From Octopus sinensis (Eukaryota), in NCBI RefSeq assembly GCF_006345805.1, contig NC_043006.1, positions 60,140,001 through 60,204,000 of the forward strand: DNA of 64,000 nt, given 5' to 3'. The stretch's first letter is position 1; the number at the start of each line of letters is the position of its first letter. Position numbers and translations under genes: made by a program. Below the pieces are notes generated by a model that had not been told where the DNA came from, did no database searches, and saw nothing but the letters and a program-made list of their open reading frames with translations. This document shows positions 2,523 to 62,505 of the stretch, one piece after another.

Positions 2523-2526
2523 AGAC

Positions 2527-2733
2527 GGCGAGCTGGGCGAAATGCTTAGCGGTATTTCGTCTGTTGTTACGTTCTGAGTTCAAATTCCGCCGAGGTCGAC
2601 TTTGCCTTTCATCCTCTCAGGGTCGATAAATAAAGTATCAGTTTCGCACTGGGTGAATGTAATCGACTTAATCCCATTGTCTGTCCTTGTTTGTCCCCTC
2701 TATGTATAGCCCCTTGTGGGTAGTAAAGAAATA
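2527..2733 (+). mobile_element. tRNA-like SINE family A (internal deletion in the head)
   Basis: GGCGAGCTGG..GAGTTCAAATTCC (B-box-like)..GTCGACTTTGCCTTTCATCC..; tail TAGCCCCTTGTGGGTAGTAAAGAAATA. Confidence 0.85.
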
Positions 2734-3539: not shown

Positions 3540-3800
3540 CTATACATACATACAACCATACATACATACATACATACATACATACATACAACCATACATA
3601 CATACATACATACATACATACATACATACATACATACATACATACAACCATACAGACATACATACATACATACATACATACATACATACATACAACCATA
3701 CATACATACATACATACATACATACATACAACCATACAGACATACAGACATACATACAGACATACATACAAATAAGCAAACATACAAGCAGACAAACAAT
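3540..3800. repeat. (CATA)n microsatellite with recurrent CAACC/CAGA variants
   Basis: Read directly from the sequence. Confidence 0.95.
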
Positions 3801-4042
3801 TTGTAAGCCAATAATAGGTAGAAATGCATTTTCTCACATTAAAGTTAATTTATATAAAATTCACAGATGGGCGTAAATGTGATATCAACTAATTCTAGTG
3901 TGAGAAAATGTACTTCTTCCAACAGTTCACACTTCGAACTTGCTAGCCCTCGGTACTGGATTTGATGGTCCAGTGGAGAGGAGTATGAAAAATCCGTGGA
4001 GTGGAAATTGAAAAAAAGCCGAATGTATATATATATATATTC

Positions 4043-4212
4043 TTTTATTTGTTTCAGTCATTTGACTGTGGCCATGCTGGAGCACCACCTTTAATCGAAC
4101 AAATCGACCCCAGAACTTATTCTCTGTAAGCCTTGTACTTATTTTATCGGTCTCTTTTGCTGAACCGCTAAGTTACGGTAATGTAAACATCGGTTGTCAA
4201 GCGATGTTGCGG

Positions 4213-4253
<41 letters not shown>

Positions 4254-4402
4254 CGACGGTCTTCTTTCAGTTTCCACCTACTAAATCCACTCACAAAGCT
4301 TTGGTCGGCTCGAGGCTACAGTTGAAGACACTTGCCCAACGTTCCACGCAGTGGGACTGAACCCGGAACCATGGGGTTGGGAAGCAAGCTACTTACCACA
4401 CG
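4043..4402 (-). mobile_element. SINE family B
   Basis: Colinear with 708-1097; followed by a family A fragment (~4420-4562) and a family B tail fragment (~4590-4700). Confidence 0.88.
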
Positions 4403-4877
4403 TCGACTCTAGTGCTCAACGGGTACTCATTTTATCGACCCCAAAAGGATGAAAGGGGCAAAGTCAGCCTCGGCGGAGGTTAGGCTCAGAAGGTAAATAC
4501 GAACGAAATGGCGCTTAGCATTTTGTTCGGCATGCTAACAACTCTGCCAGCTCATCGCCTTACAATCCTAGTACTTATTCTATCGCCTTAGAAGCCTAGT
4601 ACTAATTCTATCGGTCTCTTTTGCCGAACTGCTAGCTAACGGGGATATAAACACACCAGCATCGGTTGTCAGGCGATGTTGGGGGAACAAACATAGACAC
4701 ACAAAAGTATACACACACATACACACACACATTCATACATACATACATACATACATACATACATACATACATACCTATATATATATATAATATAATATAT
4801 ATATATATACATAGATACATACATACCTATATATATATATATAATATTATATATATACATACATACATACATACATA

Positions 4878-4942
<65 letters not shown>

Positions 4943-4957
4943 GTATGTATCTGTATC

Positions 4958-5013
<56 letters not shown>

Positions 5014-5028
5014 ATATACATACATACG

Positions 5029-5061
<33 letters not shown>

Positions 5062-5085
5062 CTGTATGTATCTGTATCTATGTAT

Positions 5086-5134
<49 letters not shown>

Positions 5135-6211
5135 GCATGCATTACTACTTATTAACATTGTACCTACCTACCTACCTACCTATCTCTCTCCCCCCTCTCT
5201 CTCTGTATCTATCTAACTAGCTAACTCTCTTTTATATCTTTATCTTTTATATTTTACTTGTGTTAACCATTGGACTGCTACTATGCTGAATAAATTGATC
5301 CTAGTTTAAAAGTTTGGGTCTTATTCTGTCGTCTCTTTTTACCGAACCACGAAGTTACGTGGGTGTAAGCAAAATCAACACGAGTTGTCAAACAGCGCCC
5401 CCCCCCCCAACGCACACACATACGTACACATGTAGATATGCATGTATCATGTAAGATATTGTATTTTATGAAGGAAAACCAGCAGCACCTATCGCCCTCA
5501 CAAGCCTGCCGCCGTTGCTTGGAGACCGTACGTAAGGTAGAGTAATGGACTGATTGTCGTGCAATGTTAAGTTTCGGTCCTTTACATTCCGTTTATTTGA
5601 ACCACTCTGCCACGCATGGTCCGCATTCCTCAGGGTACAAACAAATAGAAAAAGACAAAAGTCTTATTAAGGGAAATAACTTCGTTGAGTGGCCAAGTTA
5701 TAAAAGTTACTTCCCTTGTTTATGGGAAGAGCTTCCTTTCTCCTCATTTCAATATTCTCTTTTTTTAGGTTTTTCGGATAATTTTTTCTTCAAGCTTTTG
5801 TAATGGTTAATTAATTTAGACGTTGACTTGTTAAAGAAGGAGCGAAATTAATTAGATAACATGTTATTTATATTCAGGCTGCAGGATTGATGTTCTTGTT
5901 TAACCCTAGGTCACCAAAGATTAATTATTCAGTCCTAATCATCTCCGATATCTACTTCAATGTCCCCTTCTACCTTGAAGATGTTGGCATGTGAACAGTT
6001 AGATATGGGACTGTTATTTCTAAAATGGCACACCACTTTCAAGAGACTCACTTACTGTTCTTTTGTTGTTTACTCCTGACCAGCTCTGAAACAACCGGAG
6101 AGCCGACGAAGAGTTCCCAGCCTGGATCTTCCTGTAGAGATTCCATTGCTGTTGTCGTTATTGTTATTGTTTTATCTTGACCTCAGTGGGTTTCAACTCA
6201 GAACGTAAACA

Positions 6212-6386
6212 AGTGGATGTGTGGTAAGTAGCTTGCTTACCAACCACATGGTTCCGGGTTCAGTCCCACTGCGTGGCACCTTGGGCAAGTGTCTTCTACT
6301 ATAGCCTCGGGGCAACCAAAGCCTTGTGAGTGGATTTGGTAGACGGAAACTGGAAGAAGCCCGTCGTATACATACATACATACATA

Positions 6387-6443
<57 letters not shown>

Positions 6444-6690
6444 ATGTGTGTGTGAGTGTATGTGTGTGTGTGAGTGTATATGTTTGTGTGTCTGTTTGTC
6501 CCCCAGCATCACTTGACAACCGATGCTTGTGTGTTTAGGTCACCGTAACTTAGCGGTTCGGCAAAAGAGACCGATAGAATAAGTACTACGCTTACAAAGA
6601 ATAAGCTCTGGGGTCGATTTGCTCCACTATGAAGGCAGTGCTCCAGCATGGCCGCAGTCAAATGGCTGAAACAAGTAAAAGAGTAAAAGA
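6212..6690 (+). mobile_element. SINE family B
   Basis: GTGGTAAGTAGCTTGCTTACC..ACCTTGGGCAAGTGTCTTC.. with an internal TA/TG microsatellite. Confidence 0.88.
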
Positions 6691-7849
6691 GTAACCGAAA
6701 TAATGACATTGTCCGACGCTCTAATGAGAAATACTTTGCAATATTTTTTCTGACTCATGTCCTAAGTTCAAATCCACGTCATAGTCATGTTTACTTCTCG
6801 TCCTCTCCGGCTCTATAAAATAAAGTACCAGTCAAGTATTGGTGAACGACTAACACACTTCCTATATGTTGTTGGCTTCGCGCCAAAATTTGAAACACTA
6901 TTTATTTTTTAACAATGTTATAGGAGTTTCAACTTTTACTTTGTTAATGTGAAGTGACACAGTAAGAGAATTAAGAAATTCTACCTCATTCAGAGCTGCT
7001 TGCTCATTATATGTATATGTTTATCGCCTGATTTGCTTTCCGAAAATGTCTTCATGATGGAATATCGTAGTGCTTTTCGTTTTGCTGGAACAATCTGGCG
7101 AAAATCAACGCGCAAAAATAAGCAATTTCAAACAAAATAATGCACCATTATCCATCACATCTTTCAGCATCTGATTTTTAAAAAGATAGTTGCGCCTTGT
7201 AGGTGACTAATCCCAGTCTCATCAAATGGAAATACTATACAAGTTGCGTTTAAATTTGCAGGTAGTTATGAGAAGCGAGAACCGGATACGCATTGCGACA
7301 TAATTGCAGCAATGTTGTACGGTGTTACAGTGTAATAGCAAAAGTTGTTGTTATGTACATATATGAATAATGCATTGAGTGAAAAGATTTTACCTGTACC
7401 ATTTCGTGAATCAAGGAATAATACACCATTTGCATTAATACCTATTTCTAAGGCGGTGAACTAGCCGAAACACGCCGAACTAAACGCTCAGTGGAATTTC
7501 GTCCGTCTTATGACTTGAGTTGCAAGTCTGCCGAAGTCGACTTTTGCTTTTATTGTTTCGGGGTTGACGAAATAAGTATCAACTGAGCACTGGGATTCAG
7601 GTAATCGAAACTAAACCCCTTCCCCTACGAAAAAAAAAAAAAAAAAAATCAAACTTTGTGACTATAAAGAAAGGATTAAAACCAATTTCTTTTTTTTTTT
7701 TGAGATTTCAAATGTGTTTTGCTGTTAATCATTTAGCAAAATGATATATACTTGTTTAAAATGTTGCAGTATCGGGTTCAGCCTCGTCTTCATAAACTGT
7801 GACAAATTACTTGTCGAAAGACCATAGTTGGCAGAGGGTAAACTATCTA

Positions 7850-7854
7850 ACTAT

Positions 7855-7949
<95 letters not shown>

Positions 7950-8034
7950 GCTGTCTGTCTGTGTGTGTGTCTGTCTGTCTGTGTGTCTGTGTGTCTGTTG
8001 TGTGTCTGTCTGTCTGTCTGTCTGTGTGTCTGTG

Positions 8035-8110
<76 letters not shown>
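7850..8110. repeat. Compound microsatellite (TATC)n-(TGTC/TG)n-(TATC)n, LINE-empty site
   Basis: Read directly from the sequence. Confidence 0.97.
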
Positions 8111-8114
8111 ATAC

Positions 8115-8329
8115 TGATTTCAAATTTTGGCACAAGGCCATCAATTTCGAAGGCGAGGATTAGTCAATCACATCGACCCCAGTGATTAACTGGTATTTAT
8201 TTTATTGACACCGAATTGATGAAAGGCAAAGTCGACTTGGGCGGAAATTGAGCTCAGAACGTAAAGACAGACGAAATGCCCCTAAACATTTTGCCCGGCG
8301 TGCTAACGATTCTGTCAGCTCACCGCCTT
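8115..8329 (-). mobile_element. SINE family A-related copy in the duplicated block (paralogs ~18090-18300, 22785-22998, 26435-26552)
   Basis: GATGAAAGGCAAAGTCGAC..GAACGTAAAGACAGACGAAATGCC..GCTAACG; it has a different tail (AAATTTTGGCACAAGGCC). Confidence 0.75.
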
Positions 8330-8444
8330 CTATCTATTTATAATATCAAAGTGATAGCGGCTAATTCATTTGGTATTCAAAATTTGTCACGATGTGGGAT
8401 TGTGGATGGTAAAACTGCATAAGATAGACAGATAGATAGAGAGA

Positions 8445-8519
<75 letters not shown>

Positions 8520-9170
8520 GGGGAAGGAGAATTAAACGAACGTTACTTGCACATTATTGGTGCAGACAAATTCACACGCAGATGACAATTAACTGTTTGT
8601 ATGTATACGTATGTGAGTGAATTGAGGTATGTATATATGTAACAACAGCATTAGCATTCAAATGTTTGAGAAATGAACGAGCATTTGCTTTTGTGAAAAA
8701 TATTGTTTATTCTCATGGGTAGACAACCCCATTTCCGTTGTTTCATTTTGTTGAAATTTTTGAAATATTCTATTGTGTTAAGTCTGTGTGTGTGTGTATA
8801 GCTTAATTTAATTCGTCCTTAGTAGAAAGATACCTGTTGTTATGTCCTGTTATTAATTTTATTGCATTTGTGTAATGTTCCATTTTTATCTGTCTTTGTA
8901 TTTGTATACAATCGCTGCTTTCTTCCAAGGAATCTAATGCTCTTAGCTTAGTTTTTCCTTGGGGCTGGCCAGATTGGAGCAATCTCAAGTATAATCAGCC
9001 GAAAATGTGAAGATAATCTGGTACTTGACAAAGGAAAGAAAACTTCGAATGACCCGTCCTTGTTTTCTTTGTATCGTCTATCTGGATGTTTTGTTGTCCC
9101 ATTTCTGTATCACCTAACTGTCCGGATGCTTTGCGTTCTTGTCCCATTTTGTATTATATATTATATTATA

Positions 9171-9215
<45 letters not shown>

Positions 9216-10242
9216 GTGGTGTGTGTGTTTAGCCCCTTGTGGTAGTAAAAGAAATACATATATATATACATATATAATATTAATATATATATATAATATA
9301 TATATATATTTCTCTTTACTCTTTAGTCTTTCACTTGTTTCAGTTATTTGTCTGCGGCCATGCTGCAGCACCGCCTTTAGTCGAGCAAATCGACCCGGAC
9401 TTATTCTTTGTAAGCCCAGTACTTATTGTACCGGTCTCTTTTGCCGAACCGCTAAGTATATATTATTATATATATATATATAATATATATGGATATATAT
9501 ATATAATATATTATATATATACACATATATACATATATATATATACATACTATATATATAATATACATATATGTTCTGTATGTATGGTGTATGTATATGT
9601 ATGTGTGAGTGGGTATATGTATATTGTTTTATGAATGAGTGTTGTATGTGTGTGTGAGGAAGTAGGAAAAAGTAATGTGTTGAGGTATGAGCATGTGTGC
9701 GTTATATAGTTTATTTTTTTGTTTTTTGTTTTTTTTGTTTTTGTTTTTTGCTTGTTGTTTTTTGGTTTTGTACATTTTAAATACGAGAACTTTTTTAATA
9801 GGTTTTATATCAATTGTTTACAGGGTTTATTTAGATTATTTTAGATTAATATGATTATATATGATATTTATATAGATTATATTAGATTATATATTTTTAT
9901 TTTAATTGATTTTTATTATTTTATTATTTTAAATTATATTAAATTATATTTTAAAATATTGATATTTTTAGATCGAAAATTCCACCTGAGATTGTCCGGT
10001 AGCAGACATTGAAACAATTGTTGTGGCGGTTTATTTAATTTATATTAAAATGTTATGTATTGATTAAGGTCTTTTCTTGTTTGGTTTTAAAATAGTGGTT
10101 TTGTCTCGAATTATATTATATAAATTTTACTATAAAATTGGATTTACCCTAAATCTGATTTTTCCCTGTAATTTTGGATTCATTCCTAATTTTTATATAT
10201 ATATATATATTATATATATATATTATATATATATATATATAC

Positions 10243-10285
<43 letters not shown>

Positions 10286-10446
10286 CACAATTATATATAA
10301 ATACATACATACACACATATATATATATACATATACATATAATATAATATAGATATTATATATATATATATTATATATATATATATTATATATATATATA
10401 GGTATATATATATATACATACTATATATATATATATATGTAAATAG

Positions 10447-10963
10447 TAATGGTCTGATCACTAGTATCCGGACTCTTTTGCCATTGTAACGAAGATAAGG
10501 TGTGTGTAGTGTGCACGAAGTTTAACGTTTTAGGCTCACTTCCTCTGTTTACACCAGTGGTTTGAATTAACGTGTTTGTAACGTGTGATCGTCGCATTGA
10601 CAACGACAAAGAAAGTTGTTCTGACGATACCTGCACCGAGGCCAACGCAAATTTGCAGAGAAGTGAATGGAAAGGAGTGTATGAGTCGCACATAAGTGTA
10701 GGAGTAGATTCAAGGCGTTTCGAAGACGGGCCCGAAAAAATGTCGATATTGATTACGTTCTGGGAGACCCGCAACCAGCAAGCTGAGGAAAACATCGCAG
10801 ACGTGCGTGCAAATGTGAGGGGGAAATCGAATCCCATCCGCGAGTGATCAGGGATGTGCAGATTAGTAACGTCTCAGTTCAGTCCATTATCACTGAAGGA
10901 TTTGGGCATGAGACGCGTGTCTGCCAAAGTTTGGGCCAAAACTGCTTTCAGCTGACCAAAAAA
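10447..10963 (+). mobile_element. Mariner (Tc1/mariner) 5' fragment: left TIR and decayed N-terminal transposase
   Basis: TA-ATGGTCTGATCA..AGTATCCGGACT resembles mariner TIRs. The decayed translation RRFEDG..EENIADVRANVR..ISNVSVQSIITEDLGMRRVSAK..PKLLSADQK resembles the mariner HTH/linker region. Confidence 0.75.
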
Positions 10964-11669
10964 GATGCACCATTATCCATCCACATCTTTCAGCATCTAA
11001 TTTAGTGTTTTAAAAAGATAGTTGCCCCTTGTAGGTGACTAATCCCAGTCTCATCAAATGGAAATACTATGCAAGTTGCTTTAAATTTGCAGGTAGTTAT
11101 GAGAAGCGAGAACCGGATACGCATTGCGACATTAATTGCAGCAATGGTTGTACAGTGTTACAGTGAATAGCAAAGTTGTTGTTATGTCATATATGAATAA
11201 TGCATTGAGTGAAAAGATTTTACCTGTACCCATTTCGTGAATCAAGGAATAATACACCATTTGCATTAATACTATTTCTAAGGCGGTGAACTAGCCGAAA
11301 CACGCCGAACTAAACGCTCAGTGGAATTTCGTCCGTCTTATGACTTGAGTTGCAAGTCCGCCGAAGTCGACTTTTGCTTTTATTGTTTCGGAGTTGACGA
11401 AATAAGTATCAACTGAGCACTGGGATTCAGGTAATCGAGACTAAAATACTTCCCCTACAAAAAAAAAAAAAAAAATCAAACTTTGTGACTATAAAGAAAG
11501 GATTAAAAACAACTTCTTCTTTTTTTTTGAGATTTCAAATGTGTTTTGCTGTTAATCATTTAGCAAAATGATATATACTTATTTAAAATGTCGCAGTATC
11601 GGTTTCAGCATCGTCTTCATAAACTGTGACAAATTACTTGTCGTAAGACCATAGTTGGCAGAGGGTAAA

Positions 11670-11717
<48 letters not shown>

Positions 11718-12067
11718 TATCTATCTATCTCTATCTATCTATCTATCTATCATATGCATATCTATCTATCCTATCTATCTATCTATTCTATCTATCTATC
11801 TATCTATCTATCTATCATCTATCTATCTATATCATCTATCTATCTCTCTGGACAGACAGACGCAAGTCAAATGGGCTCCACGTAAGTTGGTATTTTGGTA
11901 CGTTCAAAAGTGTATATTGACAAATATTTTGTGTTTAAAAGTTGTGCAACAAAACATCACTGCAAACCTTTGATAAATATCTACACAAAATTTTGCCCCT
12001 TGTGGGCAAAATTGAAAAGAAAAAATTCTCAAGCCTTCGTGGTTCCATTTAGCCATTTTAATTCAAA

Positions 12068-14014
12068 ATGGCCACTGGTCACCACGAGGCTGAGGTGCAA
12101 GTCAAGCGTGACGCAGAGACAAAAAAACAGGATGCCCTGCTAGCATTACGCTGAACCTGACAACAACACCACCGCCACCACCACCATCAGCATCGACAAC
12201 AGCAACAACTATAAAACAAAGGTCGTAAGGCCATGCACCGTCCACCCCACCATCAACACCGACACCACCACCATAGCAGCTTCTGCTACGACAACAGCTT
12301 CCTCTACCCAACAACAACAAAACCAAGGTCACCGACACCCTCTTGACGACGTTGAGTTCCCCACACTGCCTCTACCACAATCTCATAAAGCAAGGGAAAT
12401 GGGGGGAGGAACAAACACGAATGAAATGTGATGCATGAACGCTAACAACGCGACCCTCCACTCACAACTCGTAACAACCCGACTCACACAGTTAACTACT
12501 ACGAACGAACGCCTTCTGCCACAAACATCACCACCACCACCACCACCACCTCCACAAAAACAATTTCGCGGAAGCCATACGCGAAAAGAAGATCTTAAAT
12601 TACTCCCAACAAATAAAGACACAAAGTCCTTGCTCACAAGAGAAGCGACACAATACATTTATATATTCCACGGGAAATCATAGAAGAAACACAAAAGAGG
12701 ACCATCATTTACAGAATACTCAACACCAAAACAAAAAAACCGGAAAGCCTACCAAAGAAAAAATTGAAAAGTGCCTCTCTTTCTCTTCCGGTGGAAATTC
12801 CGAAATTATGTGAATTGAGGAAGTAAATTTGCTACCGTGCATTTTCACTTCCATACGGAAGAACTAGCAAAAAGGTTTTCAACTCTTACTCTGCGCACAA
12901 GACCAGGTAACAATGGTACCAAGCTACCTTGGGCGCAGAATTACGAAAGTCTCAATAATAAGTGCCGCAACAATGGTGAATACCCAGTGGCTGGTATCGG
13001 CCATCTGCTCCGATATAGAAGAAGCAGATATTTTAGAAACAGCTGACATTCCAGAGGAAAGCTGGACGGGTAAAAAAACTCGAAATATTTCTTCAAATCT
13101 CCCAAGAAGTAATAAACAATTTACCAGCCTTGTTCAACTGGAAAACGACCCAAAATGTTATAGTGGTGGAGGGCAGGAGACCAAGATGCATTTATGCAAC
13201 AGTGAGGCACCACCTTAGATACGAGTGCCCAACTGCTGTCAGAAATAGGCAACAGCAACCACTCCCCAAACCTGGAAGGAAACCCCTGCTACCCCACACC
13301 TCCTTCAACCCAAAAGACAGGAAAACAGCGGACGATACAAAAACATGTTTTCCCCTCACCAACCACACACCAGAAGAGAATTACCTCCGACATCGCAACA
13401 ACACAAAGTAAAAGAAGCAAAAGAAGCAAACATACATCACCATCAACATCAAAAGACAAACCAACACCAGCACCAAGAACAACAACCAAAAAAACAAAAT
13501 TCAATGACGAAAAGACAAATTCTGCCCCTAACACCCCAACAACACAAACACCACACAAAACAACAACACCTTCTACCAAACACACATATAGATCCAAACG
13601 CTTTGCCTTTACCCTCTTCTGATTCGGACCACGTCGTCAACGACGAAAGTTCGACGGAATGGCAAATAGCCACAGGGGGTAAAAGGAAAAGACCCCAAAA
13701 AACCAAGAGAAACGCACCAAAGCAGGAGATACCTGAACCCTGAAAGCTCCATACACAACCAAACAAGCACCAACACCACAAAAACACACACAATGCTATC
13801 AGCGATAGACACAAAAGACTCCAAACTAATGGAGTACATCACAGGCTACACAAACATCTGTGAAGATGACTTTAAAACTAACAACCATCCACGCACTACA
13901 CCACCCAAACATCAAAATACTATCACACAAACACACAACACCACCAAACTCAAAGCCCTCTTCCCAAATGCTGTAGGGGGTTTTCCAGAAATATCTGTCC
14001 CAAACACTTTATAG
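12068..14014 (+). pseudogene. LINE ORF1 (gag-like nucleic-acid-binding protein), frameshifted
   Basis: C/A-rich strand with ORF pieces at 12435-12683, 12837-13411, 13345-13743 and 13793-14014. At 13187-13228, RPRCIYCNSEAHLRYEC (CX2CX4HX4C knuckle) is restored by two compensating 1-nt indels. The start at ATG 12068 and the end are tentative. Confidence 0.65.
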
Positions 14015-14125
14015 AAACCTCCTCGAAGACACATCAAAGAACGAGAAGCCAAAACTTTCGACACAAGTAAGTAACTCTCTGTACTTTCCTTTTGTGTGTT
14101 CAAAGCACACACCCCCAATAGAATC

Positions 14126-17100
14126 ATGGTCAAGATTGGTTGTGTGAATGCGCGTGGTTTGGGGTCTCCTTGGAAACAAGGATACCTCCTAAATGACATC
14201 AAGTCACACGATTGGGAATCATAGCCATAAGTGAGACCAGACTCCACGAGCCACGGGCCCTAAAGTCCTGTTTGGCGAACAGTTTAACATTTATTTTGCT
14301 CCCTGTCTGCCGAGAATGGGCGGGTAGTGCACCACGGTACTTTTCACAAGACCCTGGATCTCGAAGCAAGACGATATTCGTTAAACCGGAGGGTAGACTG
14401 GTCGTTCTGGATGTCGACGGCAGCAATGGGTGCGCTTTTCGACTCGTATCAGTTACGCACCGCCTTAACAGGTCATCCGGGTTTCTTTCGACGTCTAGAA
14501 GTATTCCTGGGAACGTCTCGTCCTTTACTTTAGTGGAATGCTACCTTGGACACGCATCTAGACTATGTGGGAGAGACAAAACAGAAGGGGATGCAAATGC
14601 CTCAGAGACCTGCTCAGACGATTCCAACTGTCTGACAGGTACCGACTCGACCAACCAAATGCACCAACGTGGACAGGAGCAAACCGCAGTGGGTCGTCGA
14701 GATCGTATCTAGATAGGATACTGTGTAGGACAGTAGACAAGGATAATTAGATGTCCACAATTCCATACAGTCAGCTACACGGATCACAAATTGGTGACGT
14801 TGTACGCTAGACTTAGATAAGGCACATAGACAGGGTCCTGGGTACTGGAAACTGAACGCATCATTCCGTCCAGACAAGTTTTCAGAGACCGGATTAGCAC
14901 ACTAGTAAGAGGGCTTTGACGGGAGCCATCATCAACAACAAATGGTGGTTTGCCCTCAAGAGAGCAGTAAAAGCAGAAGCGATTAGGACAGCAAAGCACT
15001 AACCATAGATAGAAATAGAGTAGAGGTGAGGCTGAGCTAGAAGCTAGAAGAGGCAATTAGAAGCGGCTCGCGTCCGACTAGTTTGGCGGCGAGGTTGGCC
15101 CTCGACCACACTTCAACGCCAAAAACGAAGGATGTGCTGTCAGAGCTAGGAGGCGTGCTCTAAGGAACGAAGGTGTTGGAGCCGCGAGAGAGGCCCGGGT
15201 GGCGGAGGCGCAGCAGGGCAACAAAGCCACCATTCGGTCTCTGGTAGATGAACAAGGGCGCGAATTGCTCGAGCCCAGCAAGAGTGCGAGACATTTCAGC
15301 GGCACTTTGCCCGACTGTATGGACGAGAGTGGTGAGCGTGAACGCAGGGTGGGATGGTGATTTCAGTACCTGCACAGCCTACCACGACTCTCGGTAAGAG
15401 AGGCAGAGTGCTGCGAAGGTGCCATCACGGCGGCGGATGTGCAGGACGCGATGGCAGAATGCTCGAGAGACAAATCGCCGGGTTTGGATGGTCTGCCCTA
15501 CGAGTTTTACAATTGTATGCCACACTTGTTTGGAGACGTCTTGGCAGCGGTATACTGCAACTGGCAGCAAAACGGGAGCATACCCAGTTTTGTGAGTCGA
15601 GGAGCTGTAACACTGCTGAAGAAAGATCGAAACAAGGGAAACATTATAGATAACTTTAGACCAATCACTCTGCTCAATGCAGACCTAAAAATTTTGACAA
15701 AGGTGTTAGCCAAGAGGTTGGCGCTTGTCATCGAGAAACTGGTCGACAACGCACAAACGTGCGCCGTGCCGGGCCGGAGCATCCATGACAACCTCCATCT
15801 GATGCGCTACATCATAGACAGGGTAGTTAACGAACCTGGCAGGGTGGGGCCCTGATCAACTTGGATCAATCGAAAGCCTTTGATAGGGTAGACCATCGAT
15901 ACTTGGAGGCAGTCCTGAGAGCGGCTGGTTTCGGTCCCGTCTTCCGCGGCTGGATAGCTGCCTTGTACAGAGGCATCCGTTCGGTAATTCGCGTGAATGG
16001 ACATCTATCGAGACCTTTCGACATTGCACGTTCGGTCCGTCAGGGATGCCCCCTCGGCGCTTCTATACGTATTGACTCTTGAGCCACTACTGCGGAAGCT
16101 GGCGACTCTGAGGGGCATCCCGCGAGAATTGGGATGCGGGACGAGCGTGTCTGCATACGCGGACGACGTCACCGTCATAGTGTCAAGCCACGAGCACATC
16201 GAGCGGGTCGGCGAGACACTGAAAGACTACGAAGCGGTGACAGGAGCAAAAATCAACCGGGAAAAGTCAGTGGGCTTGCGGCTCGGCACCTGGAGAAGCA
16301 AGCCCATGCCGTCCACCAGTACCTCCGTCGTGGGACGCTGGACAGACGGCCCGGTTGAGTTGCTCGGGGTCTGGTTCGGTCCGGACCTCCAAATGGAGAA
16401 GAACTGTAACGAGATAACGAGTAGGGTGGTCACTCTCGCCCAGCAATGGGCCGAGAGGAAACTGTCCCTAAAAGGTCGGGTGGAGGTGGCGAACGCGTAC
16501 ATCGCGTCCATCATCTACTACCGCCTGACCATCGTACCTTGTCCCGACCCTACCATCACCAAACTAGAACGCATCCTCTTCCGCTTCTTGTGGAAAGGAT
16601 GCGTCCCGATGGTCAGGCGATCCATTTGCTGTCAACACCCGTTAAAAGGAGGGCTGGGCATGCCGTGGTTGATGATGCGCAGACACGCGCTGAGACTGCG
16701 ACATCTCCGGCCCTATGTAGACGACGGTGAACAGGTGTGGTCGCCGTTTGTGAGGCACGCATTCCCGCAACTTGTCTCCATGACCGAACTGCAGTCGTGG
16801 ATCAAAAAGAGGTCGAGGAAGGGCGAATGGCACCGCGAGTGTCGCGTTGCTCTCAAGCAACTCTGCCGTCCCGGGTCGACCTTGAGTGACTTCAACACAA
16901 CCAAAGCATTCTATAGGGGATTAGTGGAGGGGAGGTACGACGACGAGCTCGGGGCAAACCTGGGCGTCGACGAGGAATACCTGACCCGCCTGTTTCAAAC
17001 GACTTTCGGCCCGAGCCTATGGACAACTTCCAGAGATCCCTGGCCTGGCGGTGCTACCGAGAAGCGCTACCCGTTCGGGATAAGCTCTATAGGCATGGCT

Positions 17101-17540
17101 CGAGAAACACGGGGCCGACCTGCCCGAGATGCGGGCAGAGCGACGAAACCGCTCTGCACGCAATCGTGCAGTGTCCAGCAATTTCCCACCTGTGGGCTTA
17201 TGTCGAACGACTGCTGTCACGTGTGGGACGTGTCGGTTTATCAGCCGAGTCTATCGTTAATATCGTCACACCTCCTTCCTTCAAACGGGGAGGAAGAGCT
17301 ATTTTTATCATACTTGTGGCTATGGCGAAAGAATGTATCTGGTGGACGCGCCTGAAAGGATTAGAGACAAACACTTTCCTCTCTGGTCAATCTCTCATCA
17401 ACTTCTTCAAGTACCACTTGAGGAGGAAAGTGAGAGTAGAGAGGCAAGTTTTGTCTAGTGAATGTTTTAAAAAAAGATGGGTGAATGTAGCAAGGATGGC
17501 ACGTATGAATGACAAAGCCACCTTGACTATGATTCTATGA
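14126..17540 (+). pseudogene. LINE ORF2: APE endonuclease + reverse transcriptase + C-terminal zinc finger, broken by frameshifts
   Basis: MVKIGCVNARG..ISETRL..YLDRIL..TDHKLV (APE); KSPGLDG, FRPITLLNADLKIL, DQSKAFDRVDH, VRQGCPL, YADD (16156-16167), INREKS (RT); CPRCGQSDETALHAIVQC (zf-RVT-like). ORF-track pieces 14212-14712, 15439-15855, 15861-16082, 15997-17355, 17019-17540. Confidence 0.95.
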
Positions 17541-17905
17541 ACCATAAAAATTAATACAGAGAGTTGCTTTTCTGCAAAAAAAAAAAAAATGAAAGAAAGA
17601 AATATAACATGTGACTTCATTGACCGAGGTTACCGTGGTCTTTTCCGTAGGCTTTTCTTTCCACGGGTAAACCTCACCTGTCCTCCTTTACACTTCATAT
17701 TGATATTTCTGTGATAACGATCCCTATTGATCAATTTTTCCTCTCCCTTTGTTTTTTTTAACCCCCCCTTTTTTTTGTCCCTCTTCTCTCCTTTTATGAT
17801 CCCTTTTGATCGAACACCCCCCAATTTTTTTAACCTTCAAAAGAAAAGCTCTACCTTGTAATTTGTTCTATCTGTGTGCAGCCCTGTGTGGCTAATAAAG
17901 AAACA

Positions 17906-17957
<52 letters not shown>

Positions 17958-17958
17958 C

Positions 17959-18079
<121 letters not shown>

Positions 18080-18504
18080 TCTATCATACTGATTTCAAAT
18101 TTTGGCACAAGGCCATCAATTTCGAAGGCGAGGATTAGTCAATCACATCGACCCCAGTGATTAACTAGTACTTAATTTATTGACACCGAATTGATGAAAG
18201 CCAAAGTCGACTTGGGCGGAAATTGAGCTCAGAATGTAAAGACAGACGAAATGCCCCTAAACATTTTGCCCGGCGTGCTAACGATTTTGTCAGCACCGCC
18301 TTCTATCTATTTATGATATCAAAGTGATAGCGGCTAATTCATTTGGTATTAAAAATTTGTCACGATGTGGGATTGTAGATGGTAAAACTGCATAAGATAG
18401 ACAGATAGATAGATAGAGAGAGATGGAGAGAGAGAGAGAAAGTGAGAGAGAGAGAGAGAGAATGGGGGAAGGAGAATTAAACGAACGTTACTTGCACATT
18501 ATTG

Positions 18505-18542
<38 letters not shown>

Positions 18543-18904
18543 CAGGGGTAATAAACGAAGATGATAAAATTAAAATTAGGGAATGGGTCTGTGTTTGTGT
18601 ATGTATATATGTATATATATATGTGTGTATGTGTATATGTGTGTATATAGGGACTAGTGTGCTGTGTGTGCATGTGTGTGTATGGATTTGTGTGTGTATG
18701 CGTGTATGTGAGTATGTGTGTGTATGTGTATATATATATATATATATATATTTTTCTGTGTGTATATGTATGTGTGGTCGTGTGTGTATATATACATGTG
18801 TGTATACGTGTATGCAAGTGAGTGTGTGTATGTATACATATATATGTGTATGTGTAGATGTGTATATGTATGTGTGGGTGTATGTGTGTGTGTGTGTGTA
18901 GAGG

Positions 18905-18950
18905 TATGGGTGAGAATCTCCTTATTTACCTAGGGCTCTATTCCCCCCTT

Positions 18951-18993
<43 letters not shown>

Positions 18994-19063
18994 TTATTTT
19001 TTTATTTTTATTTTTATTTTTTAATATTTTTTTATATATTTTTTTATTTTTTATTTTTTATTT

Positions 19064-19097
<34 letters not shown>

Positions 19098-19403
19098 CTT
19101 ATTTTTTATTTTTTATTTTTTATTTATTCTCCTATCTAATTTAACACTGACTCCTTGACCACTCCCCCAAGTATGATTTTTTGCGCTATGCCTACCCCCA
19201 AAAAGTCCCCCACCAACACCCCTTTAAACCTGCCTAAATGTATAAATGCCAATACAATTCTTGTTAACTAGCTTCCTGAAGATTTCTCTTGAATGAAACA
19301 GTTCTAGTCCTGTAGAAGCTCCTTCTATATAATAAATTAATTTTACTCTGCTATGTATTGAGTACCTTATTTACTGTGGTTAACCCCGAATCAACCCGGG
19401 ACC

Positions 19404-19406
<3 letters not shown>
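18905..19406 (+). mobile_element. Penelope-like pseudo-LTR / terminal repeat carrying a hammerhead
   Basis: Homologous to 28450-28792. Order: TATAAA (19241), hammerhead (19270-19320), AATAAA (19331), end CCCGGGACCTAC; preceded by degenerate TG/TA microsatellites. Confidence 0.55.
19270..19320 (+). ncRNA. Type I hammerhead ribozyme motif (minimal, Penelope-type)
   Basis: AGCTTC (stem I) CTGAAGA ttt-c-tctt-gaat GAAAC AG ttctagtc CT GTA GAAGCT (stem I'). Stem I has 6 perfect bp, stem III is ACAG/CTGT, and the predicted cut is after GUA at 19314. The first pair of stem II is U-U. Confidence 0.75.
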
Positions 19407-19462
<56 letters not shown>

Positions 19463-19671
19463 TTAGCCCCTTGTGGGTAGTAAAAAAAATACATATATAT
19501 ATACATAAAACTTAGATAAAACTTAGATATGTTTCGACCAGAGATTGGTCCAGGCCATGTCTAACTTAATAGCACCACATATATATATATATAATATATA
19601 TATATATATATACACATACATTATTATATATATATACATATATTTATATATATATATATATATATACATAC

Positions 19672-19758
<87 letters not shown>

Positions 19759-19760
19759 AT

Positions 19761-20292
19761 ATAGAGGGCATTATACATACATGCCAGGAAGCATTGTATA
19801 TACATGCCAAACGCTAAGAGGGACAATCAGTCATTTCTACCAAAAATATTACTAATCCCACCGAATGCAATTTTTCAAAATTTTCAAATTTTGAAAAATT
19901 GCATTCGGTGGGATTAGTAATATTTTTGGTAGAAATGACTGATTGTCCCTCTTAGCGTTTGGCATGTATATACAATGCTTCCTGGCATGTATGTATAATG
20001 CCCTCTATATATAAATTAATATGTTCAATAAGAAATAATTTTTTTTCGAAAAACGCTAAGAGGGACAATCAGTCATTTCTACCAAAAATATTACTAATCC
20101 CACCGAATGCAATTTTTCAAATTTTTCAAATTTTGAAAAATTGCATTCGGTGGGAATAGTAATATTTTTGGTAGAAATGACTGATTGTCCCTCTTAGCGT
20201 TTGGCATGTATATACAATGCTTCCTGGCATGTATGTATAATGCCCTCTATATATAAATTAATGTGTTCAATAAGAAATAATTTTTTTTCGAA
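19761..20292. repeat. Perfect 121-bp-arm palindrome plus a 242-bp tandem duplication
   Basis: 19761-19881 is the exact reverse complement of 19888-20008; 19809-20050 is repeated at 20051-20292. Confidence 0.9.
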
Positions 20293-20475
20293 ATTTTTTC
20301 TCTTATGAGGTTTTTACGCTATCTACCTGACAATTTCTTGTTAAGTTTTCCTTATTAAGTAGTTGTCCTTAATTGCTAAATTTTTATATATATATATATA
20401 TATATATACATATATACATACATATATATACATACACACATATACATATAAATACATACATACACACACACACAC

Positions 20476-20506
<31 letters not shown>

Positions 20507-20551
20507 ATTGTAAATATATATATATACACATACATATATATATGTAAATAG

Positions 20552-21052
20552 TAATGGTCTGATCAATAAGTGTCCGGACTTTTGCCATTGTAGCGAAGAT
20601 AAGGCGTGTGTATGTGCACGAAGTTTAACGTTTTAGCTCACTTCCTCTGTTTACAACAGTGGTTTGAATTAACGTGTGTAACGTGTGATCGTCGCATTGA
20701 CAATGACAAAGAAAGTTGTTCTGACGATACCTGCACAGAGGGCAACGCAAATTTGCAGAAAGTGAATGGAATGGAGTGTATGAGTCGCACATAAGTTTAG
20801 GAGTGGTTCAGACGTTTCGAAGATGGCCGAAAAAAATGTCGATATTGATTAATGTTCTGGGAGAGCCGCAACCAGCAAAGCTGAGGAAAACATCGCAGAC
20901 GTGCGTGCAAACGTGAGGGGGAAATCGAATCACATCCGCGAGTTATCAGAGGATGTACAGATTAGTAACGTTTCAGTTCAGTCCATTATCATTGAAGATT
21001 GGGCCAAAACTGCCAAGTTTGGGCCAAAACTGCTTTCAGCTGACCAAAAAAG
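20552..21052 (+). mobile_element. Mariner 5' fragment (paralog in duplication copy 3)
   Basis: Near-identical to 10447-10963, with a local GGGCCAAAACTGC duplication replacing CATGAGACGCGTGTC. Confidence 0.75.
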
Positions 21053-21759
21053 ATGCACCATTATCCATCACATCTTTCAGCATCTAATTTAGTGTTTTAA
21101 AAAGATAGTTGCCTCTCGTAGGTGACTAATCCCAGTCTCATCAAATGGAAATACTATGCAAGTTGCGTTTAAATTTGCAGGTAGTTATGAGAAGCGAGAA
21201 CCGGATACGCATTGCGACATAATTGCAGCAATGTTGTACAGTGTTACAGTGTAATAGCAAAAGTTGTTGTTATGTACATATATGAATAATGCATTGAGTG
21301 AAAAGATTTTACCTGTACCATTTCGTGAATCAAGGAATAATCCACCATTTGCATTAATACCTATTTCTAAGGCGGTGAACTAGCAGAAACACGCCGAACT
21401 AAACGCTCAGTGGAATTTCGTCCGTCTTATGACTTGAGTTGCAAGTCCGCCGAAGTCGACTTTTGCTTTTATTTTTTTGGGGTTGACGAAATAAGTATCA
21501 ACTGAGCACTGGGATTCAGGTAATCGAAACTAAACCCCTTCTCCTACGAAAAAAAAAAAAAAAAATCAGACTTTGTGACTATAAAGAAAGGCTTAAAACC
21601 AATTTTTTTTTTTTTTTTGAGATTTCAAATGTGTTTTGCTGTTAATCATTTAGCAAAATGATATATACTTGTTTAAAATGTTGCAGTATCGGGTTCAGCC
21701 TCGTCTTCATAAACTGTGACAAATTACTTGTGGAAAGACCATAGTTGGCAGAGGGTAAA

Positions 21760-22708
<949 letters not shown>

Positions 22709-22731
22709 GTCTGTCTGTGTGTCTGTCTGTG

Positions 22732-22773
<42 letters not shown>

Positions 22774-23089
22774 TCTATCATACTGATTTCAAATTTTGGC
22801 ACAAGGCTATCAATTTCGAAGGCGAGGATCAGTCTATCACATCGACCCCAGTGATTAACTGGCACTTATTTTATTGACACCGAATTGATGAAAGGCAAAG
22901 TCCACTTGGGCGGAAATTGAGCTCAGAACGTAATGACAGAAAAAATGCCCCTAAACATTTTGCCCGGCTTGCTAACGATTCTGTTAGCTCACCGCCTTCT
23001 ATCTATTTATAATATCAAAGTGATAGCGGCTAATTCATTTGGTATTCAAAATTTGTCACGATGTGGGATTGCGGATGGTAAAACTGCAT

Positions 23090-23948
23090 AAAGGGCTTAG
23101 TAAAATAAATTACTTTGCCGCATACTGAACTCATTAGAAATAGCAGCTAAAAAACTTTTTTAAAGCTATTTCTAATACTTAAAGAAAATCTCTCTCATAT
23201 ATAGTGTTTGCTTAATTCAACTCACAAAAGTTTGGGGGTAAGGACATCGAAAAATCAAATGCTAAGGTTATTCGAGAACGTACGTTTCAAGATTAGTCAA
23301 AACAACATTTCTATCATCGGCTCAGAAATTCCTTGGTTTGGATTTGGAAACACTGAAAATAAGAACATACCCTTTCGAAGATCTTTATTTTACTAAGCCC
23401 TTTTATATAATGTAATAATTTGAATTCGCCTTGAATGGTCCCTTTGCATACTGAACACTTGGTGAAATTGATTAATAATTAATTAATTTTGCCCTCAATT
23501 GTTGAAATTATAATTAATCTCCCTCTGATTAATGCTTCGGATTTTACCGAAATAAGCATAGTGTTTGATGATTTTAACCCACGCTGGTGGAAAGGGGAGA
23601 ACAGAGATTCTTCGCTTGCTTATTTGAATTTGTTGGCACTGTTAGTTGGGAGCAGATCTTCGAAAGGGTATGTTCTTATTTTCAGTGTTTCCAAATCCAA
23701 ACCAAGGAATTTCTGAGCCGATGATAGAAATGTTGTTTTGACTAATCTTGAAACGTACGTTCTCGAATAACCTTAGCATTTGATTTTTCGATGTCCTTAC
23801 CCCCAAACTTTTGTGAGTTGAATTAAGCAAACACTATATATGAGAGAGATTTTCTTTAAGTATTAGAAATAGCTTTAAAAAAGTTTTTTAGCTGCTATTT
23901 CTAATGAGTTCAGTATGCGGCAATGTAATTTATTTTACTAAGCCCTTT
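23090..23948. mobile_element. Foldback/MITE-like element with ~295-bp terminal inverted repeats
   Basis: 23090-23384 is the reverse complement of 23654-23948 (I saw one mismatch). An extra 20-bp terminal copy TTATTTTACTAAGCCCTTT lies at 23385-23403. Confidence 0.8.
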
Positions 23949-24024
23949 TATATAATATATATATATATACATACACACATATATATATATATAAATACAT
24001 ACATACACATATATATATATATCC

Positions 24025-24079
<55 letters not shown>

Positions 24080-24134
24080 ATATATATTTTATATACATGT
24101 ATATATATATACATACATATATATATGTAAATAG

Positions 24135-24643
24135 TAATGGTCTGATCACTAAGTATCCGGACTTTTGCCATTGTAACGAAGATAAGGCGTGTGTATGTGC
24201 ACGAAGTTTAACGTTTTAGCTCACTTCCTCTGTTTACAACAGTGGTTTGAATTAACGTGTGTAACGTGTGATCGTCGCATTGACAATTTCAAAGAAAGTT
24301 GCTCTGACGATACCTGCTCAGAGGCCAACACAAATTTGCAGAAAGTGAATGGAAAGGAGTGTATGAGTCGCACATAAGTGTAGGAGTAATTCAGACGTTT
24401 CGAAGACGGCCGAAAAAATGTCGATATTGATTAACGTTCTGGGAGAGCCGCAACCAGCAAAGCTGAGGAAAACATCGCAGACGTGCGTGCAAATATGAGG
24501 GGGAAATCGAATCCCCATCCGCGAGTTATCAGAGGATGTGCAGATTAGTAACGTTTCATTTCAGTCCATTATCACTGAAGATTTGGGCATGAGACGCGTG
24601 TCTGCCAAGTTTGGGCCAAAACTGCTTTCAGCTGACCAAAAAA
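24135..24643 (+). mobile_element. Mariner 5' fragment (paralog in duplication copy 4)
   Basis: Near-identical to 10447-10963. Confidence 0.75.
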
Positions 24644-25329
24644 GATGCACCATTATCCATCACATCTTTCAGCATCTAATTTAGTGTTTTAAAAAGATAG
24701 TTGCCCCTTGTAGGTGATTAATCCCAGTCTCATCAAATGGAAATACTATACAAGTTGCGTTTAAATTTGCAGGTAGTTATGAGAAGCGAGAACCGGATAC
24801 GCATTGCGACATAATTGCAGCAATGTTGTACGGTGTTACAGTGTAATAGCAAAAGTTGTTGTTATGTACATATATGAATAATGCATTGAGTGAAAAGATT
24901 TTACCTGTACCATTTCGTGAATCAAGGAATAATACACCATTTGCATTAATACCTAATTCTAAGGCGGTGAACTAGCAGAAACACGCCGAACTAAACGCTC
25001 AGTGGAATTTCGTCCGTCTTATGACTTGAGTTGCAAGTCCGCCGAAGTCGACTTTTGCTTTTATTGTTTCGGGGTTGACGAAATAAGTATCCACTGAGCA
25101 CTGGGATTCAGGTAATCGAATCTAAACCCCTTCCCCTACTTTGTGACTATAAAGAAAGGCTTAAAACCAATTTTTTTTTTTTTTTTTTGAGATTTCAAAT
25201 GTGTTTTGCTGTTAATCATTTAGCAAAATGTTATACACTTGTTTAAAATGTTGCAGTATCGGGTTCAGCTTCGTCTTCATAAACTGTGACAAATTACTTG
25301 TCGAAAGACCATAGTTGGCAGAGGGTAAA

Positions 25330-25464
<135 letters not shown>

Positions 25465-25469
25465 TCTAT

Positions 25470-26210
25470 CTCCTTCCTTCAAACGGGAAGGAAGAGCTAT
25501 TTTCATCATCCTTGTGGCTATGGCGAAAGAATGTATCTGGTGGACGGTCTGAAAGGATTTGAGACAAACACTTTCCTCTCTGGTCAATCTCTCATCAACT
25601 TCTTCAAGTACCACTTGAAAAGGAAAGTGAGAGTAGAGAGGCAAGTTTTGTCTAGCGAATGTTTTAAAAAAAGATGGGTGAATGTAGCAAGGATGGCACG
25701 TATGAATGACGAAGCCACCTTGAGCATAATCCTATGAACCCAGAAATTGAAAACAGAGGGTTACCCACTTGCAAACAAATGTGTTAACATATAACAATAT
25801 TGACCGAGGTTACCGTGGTCTTTTTCGTAGGCTTTTCTTCCCACGGATAAACCTTACTTGCTTTCCCCTTTACACCATATATCATAACACTGTGATACAC
25901 GATCCCTATTGATCGTTCTTTTTTTTCCTCTTCCCCTTTTTTCTTTTTTTTTCTTCTTTTTTCATTTCTCTTTCCTTTTGTTCCTTTTCATTCTCTTTTT
26001 TTTCTTTTTATTCTTTTTATTTTATTCAATTTTGTTTTGTTTTTTTGTTGTTTTTGTTCTTTTCTTCCCTTTTACGATCCCTCTTGATCCAAAACCTACG
26101 CCACCCCTTTTTTTTTCTTTTGTTTTTTGTTCTCTTTATCCCCCAAAAGAAAAGCTCTACCTTGTAACTTGTCCCATCTGTGTGCAGCCCTGTGTGGCCA
26201 ATTAAGAAAC

Positions 26211-26211
<1 letters not shown>
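25470..26211 (+). mobile_element. Second 5'-truncated Tx1-type LINE copy with the same truncation point as 21896
   Basis: Same 5' junction (TATCTCCTTCC) and nearly the same 3'UTR as 21896-22631; the poly(A)-signal position reads AATTAA. Confidence 0.93.
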
Positions 26212-26278
<67 letters not shown>

Positions 26279-26279
26279 A

Positions 26280-26352
<73 letters not shown>

Positions 26353-26383
26353 GTCTGTCTGTCTGTGTGTCTGTCTGTGTGTA

Positions 26384-26421
<38 letters not shown>

Positions 26422-26554
26422 TCTATCTATCATACTGATTTCAAATTTTGGCACAAGGCTATCAATTTCGAAGGCGAGGATCAGTCAATCACATCGACCC
26501 CAGTGATTAACTGACACCGAATTGATGAAAGGCAAAGTCCACTTGGGCGGAAAT

Positions 26555-26905
26555 TATATATATAAGGCTTGGACCACGTGCCATCCGTCCACAACAAAAA
26601 TCTAAATCGCATCACATGACGACAATACGACACAACTATTTCACCTCAATTGAACCTGCTCTCTTCAACATTACACCAGGGCACGTCAAAAAAGAAACTG
26701 ATCACACAAAATTCAAGAAGTCTTTGGACAAATTCCTTCAAACAGTACCGGACAAACCACCCACACCCGGATATGTCTCCGCAAACAATAACTCTCTGCT
26801 CGAATGGGCCTTGGTGCCCAAATCCTGAACTGAAAGACTTCACCAGGTGGTGCCATTAAGTTAGACATGGCCTGGGCCAATACTGGCCAAAACCTTTCTA
26901 AGTTA
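26555..26905 (+). mobile_element. 3' end of a CR1/L2-group LINE
   Basis: LFNITP..FKKSLDKFLQTVPDKP..GYVSANNNSL is a typical ORF2 C-terminus; the tail is TTCTAAGTTATTCTAAGTT. The same 3' end occurs inverted at ~19505-19580. Confidence 0.65.
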
Positions 26906-40965: not shown

Positions 40966-40984
40966 CAAACCATTGCCTCGTTAC

Positions 40985-58292: not shown

Positions 58293-58324
<32 letters not shown>

Positions 58325-62473: not shown

Positions 62474-62505
<32 letters not shown>

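Follow-up and report, generated by a model that had tools for sequence, protein, structure and literature searches.

A 3' tail common to an octopod L1-group LINE and a putatively tRNA-type SINE marks a candidate stringent-type partnership

Introduction

Which element supplies the enzyme that copies the SINEs of octopuses? SINEs occupy about 12% of the Octopus vulgaris genome and are a main component of octopus repeat expansion, and attention in octopus has so far been on a brain-expressed RTE LINE. The literature that we searched, which did not cover Repbase, names no partner of octopus SINEs. A common 3' tail is an accepted mark of stringent SINE/LINE partners (PMC3747384), and such a tail is what raised the question at the present locus. 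The original prediction, made from a 64-kb window of octopus DNA (the whole stretch analysed here, to which all coordinates refer), was that an abundant SINE, SINE A, ends in the same sequence as a LINE of the L1/Tx1 type and uses that LINE's machinery. We ask here how far the common tail is real, which of the two elements it belongs to, and what it says of the enzyme that mobilises the SINE.

Results

Structure and classification of the LINE

The elements on which the argument depends are collected in Table 1.

Table 1. LINE, SINE and microsatellite features of the 64-kb window.
Feature	Position	Strand	Details
L1-group LINE, full length, dead	11850-17905	+	~6.06 kb; from ORFs/frames, Pfam and tblastn of relatives
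LINE ORF1 region	~12000-14100		degenerate CCHC remnant near 13160-13231
LINE APE endonuclease	~14120-14800
LINE RT	~15440-16400		Pfam RVT_1 in three frame-shifted pieces
LINE zf-RVT	~17040-17200		Pfam
LINE ORF2 stop	17540
LINE 3' UTR	17541-17905		365 nt, pyrimidine-rich
LINE 3'-terminal tail	17854-17905	+	reads CCTTGTAATTTGTTCTATCTGTGTGCAGCCCTGTGTGGCTAATAAAGAAACA
UCUGUGU in LINE tail	17871-17877
Hairpin in LINE tail	17880-17883 with 17890-17893		AGCC/GGCU
Terminal part of LINE tail	17894-17904		AAUAAAGAAAC, then straight into (TATC)n
(CTAT)n	11670-11849	.	directly upstream of LINE 5' end
(TATC)n(TGTC)n(TATC)n	17906-18085	.	~45 units, directly downstream of LINE 3' end
Paralogous empty site	7843-8110	.	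same microsatellite, LINE absent; flanks ...GGGTAAA and ATACTGATTTC...
3' fragment of LINE	21897-22631	+	735 bp; ORF2 end, 3' UTR and tail (22580-22630)
Segmental duplicate of the 21897-22631 fragment	25471-26211	+	97% identical; tail 26160-26210
SINE A1	46961-47182	+	tail ~47134-47182; imperfect TSD GG[C/T]AAACCAA
SINE A1	42652-42883	-	perfect 11-bp TSD GGTATTGATGA abutting both ends
SINE A1	45809-46039	-	3' end abuts 5'-truncated SINE fragment 45712-45788
SINE A1, damaged head	2524-2733	+	inserted beside (AT)n
SINE A1-type fragment, tail only	19458-19490	+	after (TG)n; paralogue 9224-9256
SINE A2	8111-8328	-	tail GGCCTTGTGCCAAAATTTGAAATCAGTAT, then (GATA)n; paralogues 18086-18294, 22780-22997, 26432-26555
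Independent A2-type SINE	40790-40975	-	tail GGTGGCCATGTGCCAAAATTTTAAC; without microsatellite

The LINE is a dead copy, several frameshifts and stops being needed to align its relatives to it by tblastn. Intact relatives are about 1150 amino acids long and carry Exo_endo_phos (APE), RVT_1 and zf-RVT domains. Relatives match human L1 ORF2p, the nearest solved relative of these ORF2 proteins, more strongly (1e-47 to 1e-56) than R2 (1e-16 to 1e-23). Because of this domain set, and because the matches to human L1 ORF2p are the stronger ones, membership of the L1 group is supported for the window LINE, in agreement with the L1 half of the label that the original prediction had given it.

The Tx1 half has a different standing. 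Among some 200 relatives none has an informative clade name, almost all being unnamed ENA or JGI proteins, and the nearest named relative comes from the octopod Argonauta hians. The hints of Tx1 are the zf-RVT domain, a CCHC motif in ORF1 of one relative (L017) that scores 19.1 bits, under the cut-off of 20.8, and of which the window copy has a degenerate remnant, the microsatellite context, and the label L1-Tx1 that octopus L1-group LINEs carry in published work (PMC13282606, PMC8967140). Type I-like ORF1 proteins, with an RRM and/or a CCHC knuckle, have been tied to Tx1 (PMC5203782), and a Pfam search for Transposase_22 gave no match in the window LINE or in the relatives searched. Thirteen recently active L1-Tx1 families are known from Octopus vulgaris (PMC13282606). 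We infer the clade label from the hints listed above, and describe this octopod LINE family as L1-group and probably Tx1-like.

Two bacterial database entries, MCP3653585.1 and WP_288064025.1 ('zinc-binding domain-containing protein [Herbaspirillum sp.]', from a MAG), are 62% identical to the C-terminus of the LINE ORF2; the protein is almost certainly octopod host contamination of a bacterial bin.

Insertion site and local duplication

The LINE terminates in ...TAAAGAAAC (also given as ...CTAATAAAGAAAC) directly before the microsatellite. The region 7133-26555 is a four-fold local segmental duplication, each unit of which consists of a 0.7-1.5 kb segment, (CTAT)n and a minus-strand SINE A2, with flanks that are 94-98% identical. 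In unit 1 the microsatellite is uninterrupted (7843-8110), in unit 2 it contains the full LINE, and in units 3 and 4 it contains the 735-bp 3' fragment at the same place, the fragment at 21897-22631 being flanked by two halves of (CTAT)n. Since unit 1 is empty, we conclude that the LINE entered a (CTAT)n array that was already present.

The three LINE ends in the window (at 17.9, 22.6 and 26.2 kb) are paralogous copies of one duplicated segment, not independent insertions. We considered whether two independent insertions demonstrate target specificity, and set this aside as unproven, given that coding identity between units is 94-95% and flank identity 94-96%. As the coding identity is no lower than that of the flanks, it is possible that a single insertion was followed by duplication and 5' deletion; the junction of the fragment does not tell 5' truncation from later deletion. 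In Argonauta the LINE copies lie outside microsatellites, and one other relative (L003) is followed by (ATT)n.

Some details of these junctions are recorded here as observations. In the units with a truncated LINE there is a (CTGT)n block in both halves of the microsatellite (21760-21897 and 22632-22779; 25330-25471 and 26212-26431), and in the empty unit there is one such block only; 3' transduction of the downstream repeat, a long TSD and unequal exchange are all possible origins of the double blocks. At the 5' junction of the full LINE (11850-11866), (CTAT)n is followed by CTCTGGACAGACAGACG, in which (ACAG)3 corresponds, in reverse complement, to the (CTGT)n of the downstream array. Elsewhere, the window holds a (TACA)n-type array of about 7.3 kb (56737-63997) involved in a 4.0-kb direct duplication (55788-59814 and 59979-64000, 98% identical), a 295-bp inverted repeat inside the duplicated region (23090-23384 and 23654-23948, 99.7% identical, arms about 270 bp apart), a second inverted pair (1275-1495 and 1823-2043, 97%), and two tandem 242-bp units at 19809-20293 (98% identical) whose consensus has the internal palindrome CCACCGAATGCAATTTTTCAAAATTTTCAAATTTTGAAAAATTGCATTCGGTGG.

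SINE A and its tail types

SINE A is about 230 bp long, with a core of GACTTTGCCTTTCATCC...GTCGATAAA.TAAGTACCAG, and its core motif is matched 11 times in the 64 kb, against 0.01 expected. Every copy has a B-box-like GAGTTCAAATTCC; ARAGORN found no tRNA in the window, and Rfam gave the head no tRNA match at E <= 1. The stretch ...TTTCATCCTTTCGGGGTCGATAAA.TAAGTACCAG... appears to resemble the core of Deu/Nin-type SINEs. The label tRNA-Deu given to octopus SINEs (PMC8967140) is consistent with a Deu-like core in SINE A.

The family has at least two tail types. SINE A1, present as four full copies and one tail-only fragment (in two paralogues), has a tail like that of the LINE, while SINE A2 has the same head and core with another tail, its terminal sequence being GGCCTTGTGCCAAAATTTGAAATC. 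The limits of the element, GGCGGCGAG...TAAAGAAATA, are set by the A1 copy at 42652-42883, where the perfect TSD fixes the 3' terminus as ...GGGTAATAAAGAAATA. The A1 TSDs are 10-11 bp long, and the insertion sites lie outside (CTAT)n in all copies, whereas every LINE copy in the window lies inside it, a contrast that involves few independent events.

A scan of viral contigs for further copies returned six chance matches, and a scan of metagenomes three loci with core matches of 23-39 nt only, so the SINE consensus rests on the copies in the window. In two metagenome contigs (L012, 1786-1824; L011, 9434-9464) the matches are 31-39 nt long, 90-92% identical and confined to the SINE core, which fits a core domain common to SINEs of other animals. 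Within the window, the A1 copy and the truncated fragment that abut one another in 45712-46039 meet at ...GAAATA/GGTATTTCGTCTG (the slash marks the junction), and either nested insertion or a chimera formed by template switching may account for the joint.

The LINE and SINE A1 have homologous ends

All the strings and coordinates quoted in the original prediction were found in place, including the minus-strand SINE at 42652, and the identity that it reported between 22588-22603 in the LINE and 47139-47154 in the SINE is exact at 16 of 16 positions. Aligned locally, the tails of the LINE and of SINE A1 give 54 columns, of which 43 are matches, seven mismatches and four gap columns. We compared these alignments with shuffled controls. 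The eight pairs formed by the LINE tails at 17 and 22 kb with the four SINE ends score 35-53, against 14-15 +/- 2.5 for dinucleotide-preserving shuffles (z = 8-16), and none of 2000 shuffles was as good. For the LINE tail at 26 kb, which was taken 8 nt short of the end of the element, z is 5.5-11.7 and the lowest score was reached by two of 2000 shuffles. A degenerate tail pattern, allowing up to three mismatches, has seven matches in the window where none is expected, and all seven are ends of these LINE and SINE elements. Both elements terminate within 1-2 nt of a common ...AAAGAAA(C/T), and poly(A) is absent from both. Homology between the LINE and SINE A1 covers their last ~50 nt and reaches the 3' terminus of each.

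Homologous is not identical. There is a consistent difference between the LINE version, GCAGCCCTGTGTGGCY, and the SINE version, TTAGCCCCTTGTGGGT, and the hairpin and loop read GCCC-CUUGU-GGGU in SINE A1 and AGCC-CUGUGU-GGCU in the window LINE. Over its last 60 nt the window SINE tail is ~70% identical to the Argonauta LINE and ~67% to the window LINE.

The tail in LINE relatives

We collected relatives of the LINE through their proteins, the tail not being a selection criterion. Their ends have a common module, in which UCUGUGU is followed by a hairpin of 4 bp, with a loop of the CUUGU type, and this by AAUAAAGAAAU. In the Argonauta hians locus (L001) a full LINE terminates in ...TTCTGTGTCAGCCAGGTGGCTAAGAAAGAAATT, and a 5'-truncated LINE with a complete 3' UTR in ...TTCTGTGTCGGCCCTTGTGGCTAATAAAGAAATCTAT. 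The LINE of JGI contig L003 ends in ...GGGCCCTTGTGGCCAATAAAAGAAATC, directly before its (ATT)n; L013 retains part of the tail, CTTGTGGCCAAT; and in L015, a close relative (82% at the DNA level), the end of the contig falls just inside the tail. A more distant LINE (L017/L018, ~44% ORF2 identity) has AGGCCTTGTGCCAAATTTG in its 3' UTR, about 45 nt before the 3' end, and in L017 this is nearly the tail of SINE A2. Comparison of these ends shows that the LINE family has conserved the tail, as a module, in more than one genus. Since it is conserved in this way (in Argonauta, in L003, in part in L013, and as the hairpin in L017), we take the LINE to be the donor of the tail.

We also considered whether the L017 family comes from the same species as the window, and rejected this, as SINE A is absent from it and its identity to the window is only 79%, over 87 nt. 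L017 (ENA ERZ21867824) contains two full-length LINE copies head to tail, 24 bp apart (3620-10189 and 10214 onward) and 99.9% identical over 2.5 kb, an arrangement suggestive of tandem amplification or of more than one insertion at the site.

A replicate in Argonauta

The 18-kb Argonauta hians locus also holds four SINE copies, whose head is different, whose core is homologous to that of SINE A and whose tail reads ...TCTGTCCTTCTGTGTTCGGCCCTTGTGGCTAATAGAGAAATCTAT. Aligned with the Argonauta LINE tail, this SINE tail matches in 56 of 66 columns (z = 24, none of 2000 shuffles as good), and the Argonauta LINE and SINE both terminate in GAAATCTAT. Alignments of LINE with SINE extend over 54 columns within the window, and over 62-66 columns within Argonauta for three of the four SINEs (34 for the remaining copy, Arg_SINE_a); alignments across the two genomes extend over 34-40 columns. 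Because the alignments within a genome are the longer ones, the SINE tail appears to track the resident LINE in each lineage. Such tracking is expected of partners, and we find it hard to explain otherwise.

A short hairpin in the tail

The original prediction had further proposed a conserved stem-loop in the tail (AGCC..GGC / CCC..GGG). Folding energies of single tails have z-scores of +0.5 to -2.6 against shuffles, which are not significant, and for this reason we used covariation to assess the hairpin. With 13 tails aligned, 90% of the cells of the four pairs hold a standard pair; column shuffling gives 70.6%, and none of 500 shuffles reached the observed value. Both sides have changed in three of these pairs, and when the partner is displaced by 1-3 columns pairing falls to 12-47%. 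Extending the set to 18 tails, with the SINEs of Argonauta, a third copy of A2 and the L017 family, gives 86% paired against 65.5% in shuffles (again none of 500), 11-44% with slid partners, and 11 doubly changed cells where 3.8 are expected. As the tails are related to one another, these shuffle counts are not probabilities, and the covariation is supportive and not proof. It points to a 4-bp hairpin with a CUUGU loop, kept through compensatory changes. The stem-loop is thus real and covarying, yet it has only four base pairs and thermodynamic z-scores that are not significant.

An outer stem pairing the common UCUGUGU with AAUAAAGA was also considered. It folds in several tails, SINE A2 having AAAUU/AAUUU instead, and we did not count it because the MAFFT registers differ between sequences.

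Discussion

A family-level partnership

The reading that we favour, and consider likely, is that 17854-17905 is the recognition tail of an octopod L1-group LINE, acquired by a putatively tRNA-type SINE superfamily of the same genomes. Judged from sequence, the two would form a candidate stringent-type SINE/LINE partnership at the level of the family. The claim that SINE A uses this LINE's machinery is accordingly kept in part: the common tail, its replicate in Argonauta, its conservation in the LINE and the covarying hairpin make the LINE family a candidate partner, while the window copies themselves are less probable drivers, given the 70% and 67% identities noted above and the location of these copies in (CTAT)n. 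The actual driver of SINE A1 is probably a sister subfamily of the window LINE.

A mechanism may be outlined as follows. The LINE ORF2 protein would bind the hairpin and the A-rich module of the LINE RNA and, acting in trans, those of SINE transcripts made by Pol III, and target-primed reverse transcription would start at the last few bases of the RNA, annealed to the nicked target. In most copies the TSD opens with a repeat of the bases found after GAAAT(A). The TSD starts with GGTA in three of the four window SINEs (the upstream TSD copy has GGCA in one of these) and with CTAT in the Argonauta elements, one Argonauta SINE having the TSD CTATTTCAAG. Annealing of the RNA 3' end would explain why TSD starts repeat the element end, and would also explain why (CTAT)n surrounds the window LINE, which at its end runs on into (TATC)n: a LINE RNA ending in (CUAU)n would land in (CTAT)n with or without a sequence-specific endonuclease, a statement that concerns very few events.

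A broader version of this model would have the dominant octopod SINE superfamily driven throughout the history of the group by an L1/Tx1-type LINE family that reads a hairpin tail in place of poly(A), with tails co-evolving in each lineage and annealing of the last 4-5 bases largely setting the targets. We regard it as speculative and, in this full form, doubtful. If it were true, a single annealing rule would explain both dispersed SINEs and LINE copies embedded in microsatellites.

Other explanations of the common tail

The simplest alternative is chance or low complexity. Both ends are T/G-rich and then A-rich, and a TG-rich stretch followed by AAAGAAA is compositionally simple; yet the absence of any equally good alignment among 2000 shuffles for the eight pairs, the seven pattern matches where none is expected and the z of 24 in Argonauta effectively refute this explanation. 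The relationship could also run in the reverse direction or be an accident, the LINE 3' end being a captured or adjacent 5'-truncated fragment of SINE A1 with no bearing on recognition by the enzyme. The window does contain SINE pieces, about 33 bp long, that consist of the tail only (9224-9256 and 19458-19490), and a single accident could suffice if the three LINE ends stem from one insertion. We nevertheless consider a reverse direction or an accident very unlikely, given that in relatives of the LINE, both in another genus and on unrelated contigs, the module stands in the same position behind the element's own 3' UTR, that the truncated Argonauta LINE has a complete LINE 3' UTR upstream of its tail, and that GCAGCCCTGTGTGGCY in the LINE differs consistently from TTAGCCCCTTGTGGGT in the SINE.

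An explanation closer to our own is that the tail is shared by descent while a different autonomous element mobilises SINE A1, either a CUUGU-loop subfamily of the LINE family without a preference for microsatellites or a LINE of another clade with a similar tail. The SINE hairpin GCCC-CUUGU-GGGU is nearer to the Argonauta and L003 type than to that of the window LINE, and the insertion contexts of the LINE and SINE A1 differ. The tail of SINE A2, moreover, matches another LINE tail type, that of L017, from which it follows that several tail variants exist. Against a different driver, the 16/16 block CTTGTCCCATCTGTGT upstream of the hairpin is common to the window SINE and the window LINE only, which argues for a tail donor close to the window LINE, and no other element within the 64 kb has a tail-like match. 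On balance we think this explanation fairly unlikely, and retain the partnership between the LINE family and the SINE superfamily as our working interpretation.

A structured common tail points to L1-Tx1 families as the likely engine of octopus SINEs, and provides a testable cis-element, the hairpin together with AAUAAAGAAAU. L1-group LINEs that apparently read a specific 3' sequence and not poly(A) are very few, and the octopod family adds an animal example to them, which is relevant to the question whether the ancestor of the L1 group already had stringent recognition.

Comparison with known systems

The octopod pair resembles eel UnaSINE1/UnaL2 and the tortoise Pol III SINE/CR1 (PMC3747384) in that a SINE, in octopods one of putative tRNA type, has a 3' end homologous to that of a resident LINE, with a stem-loop before a short terminus, no poly(A), and a tail conserved in the LINE family. 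It differs from these systems in that the octopod LINE belongs to the L1 group, and not to L2, CR1 or RTE, and the stem has only four base pairs, possibly extended by imperfect outer pairs.

Known SINEs with tails of the L1 clade are few: ZmSINE2 and ZmSINE3 of maize, paired with LINE1-1_ZM, and SINEX-3_CR of Chlamydomonas, paired with L1-1_CR (PMC3472496, PMC3747384). In these pairs, as in the octopod one, an L1-group LINE apparently recognises its 3' end by sequence. Of the 58 pairs in a survey from 2012, three SINEs had an L1 tail, each of them from a plant or an alga and each with poly(A) (PMC3472496). The maize and Chlamydomonas pairs have poly(A) ends, whereas the octopod pair is from an animal, lacks poly(A) and is seen in two genera.

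Crocodilian SINEU/Tx1-Mar (PMC4494074) is a further parallel, in which a SINE was assigned to a Tx1-type LINE from genomic signatures, the Tx1 label of the octopod LINE being inferred. There the link is a shared Mariner target, the SINE heads are derived from snRNA and the ends are poly(A); in octopods the link is the tail sequence, and a shared target was not seen. Finally, the location of the window LINE inside a microsatellite recalls the Tx1-clade elements Kibi in (TC)n and Koshi in (TTC)n and crocodilian Tx1 in (TTCC)n/(TTTC)n (PMC4494074, PMC3812793). Unlike these, the octopod LINE is represented there by one, possibly two, insertion events and its Argonauta relatives lie outside microsatellites, and its location in (CTAT)n may be due to annealing of the terminal repeat and not to specificity of the endonuclease.
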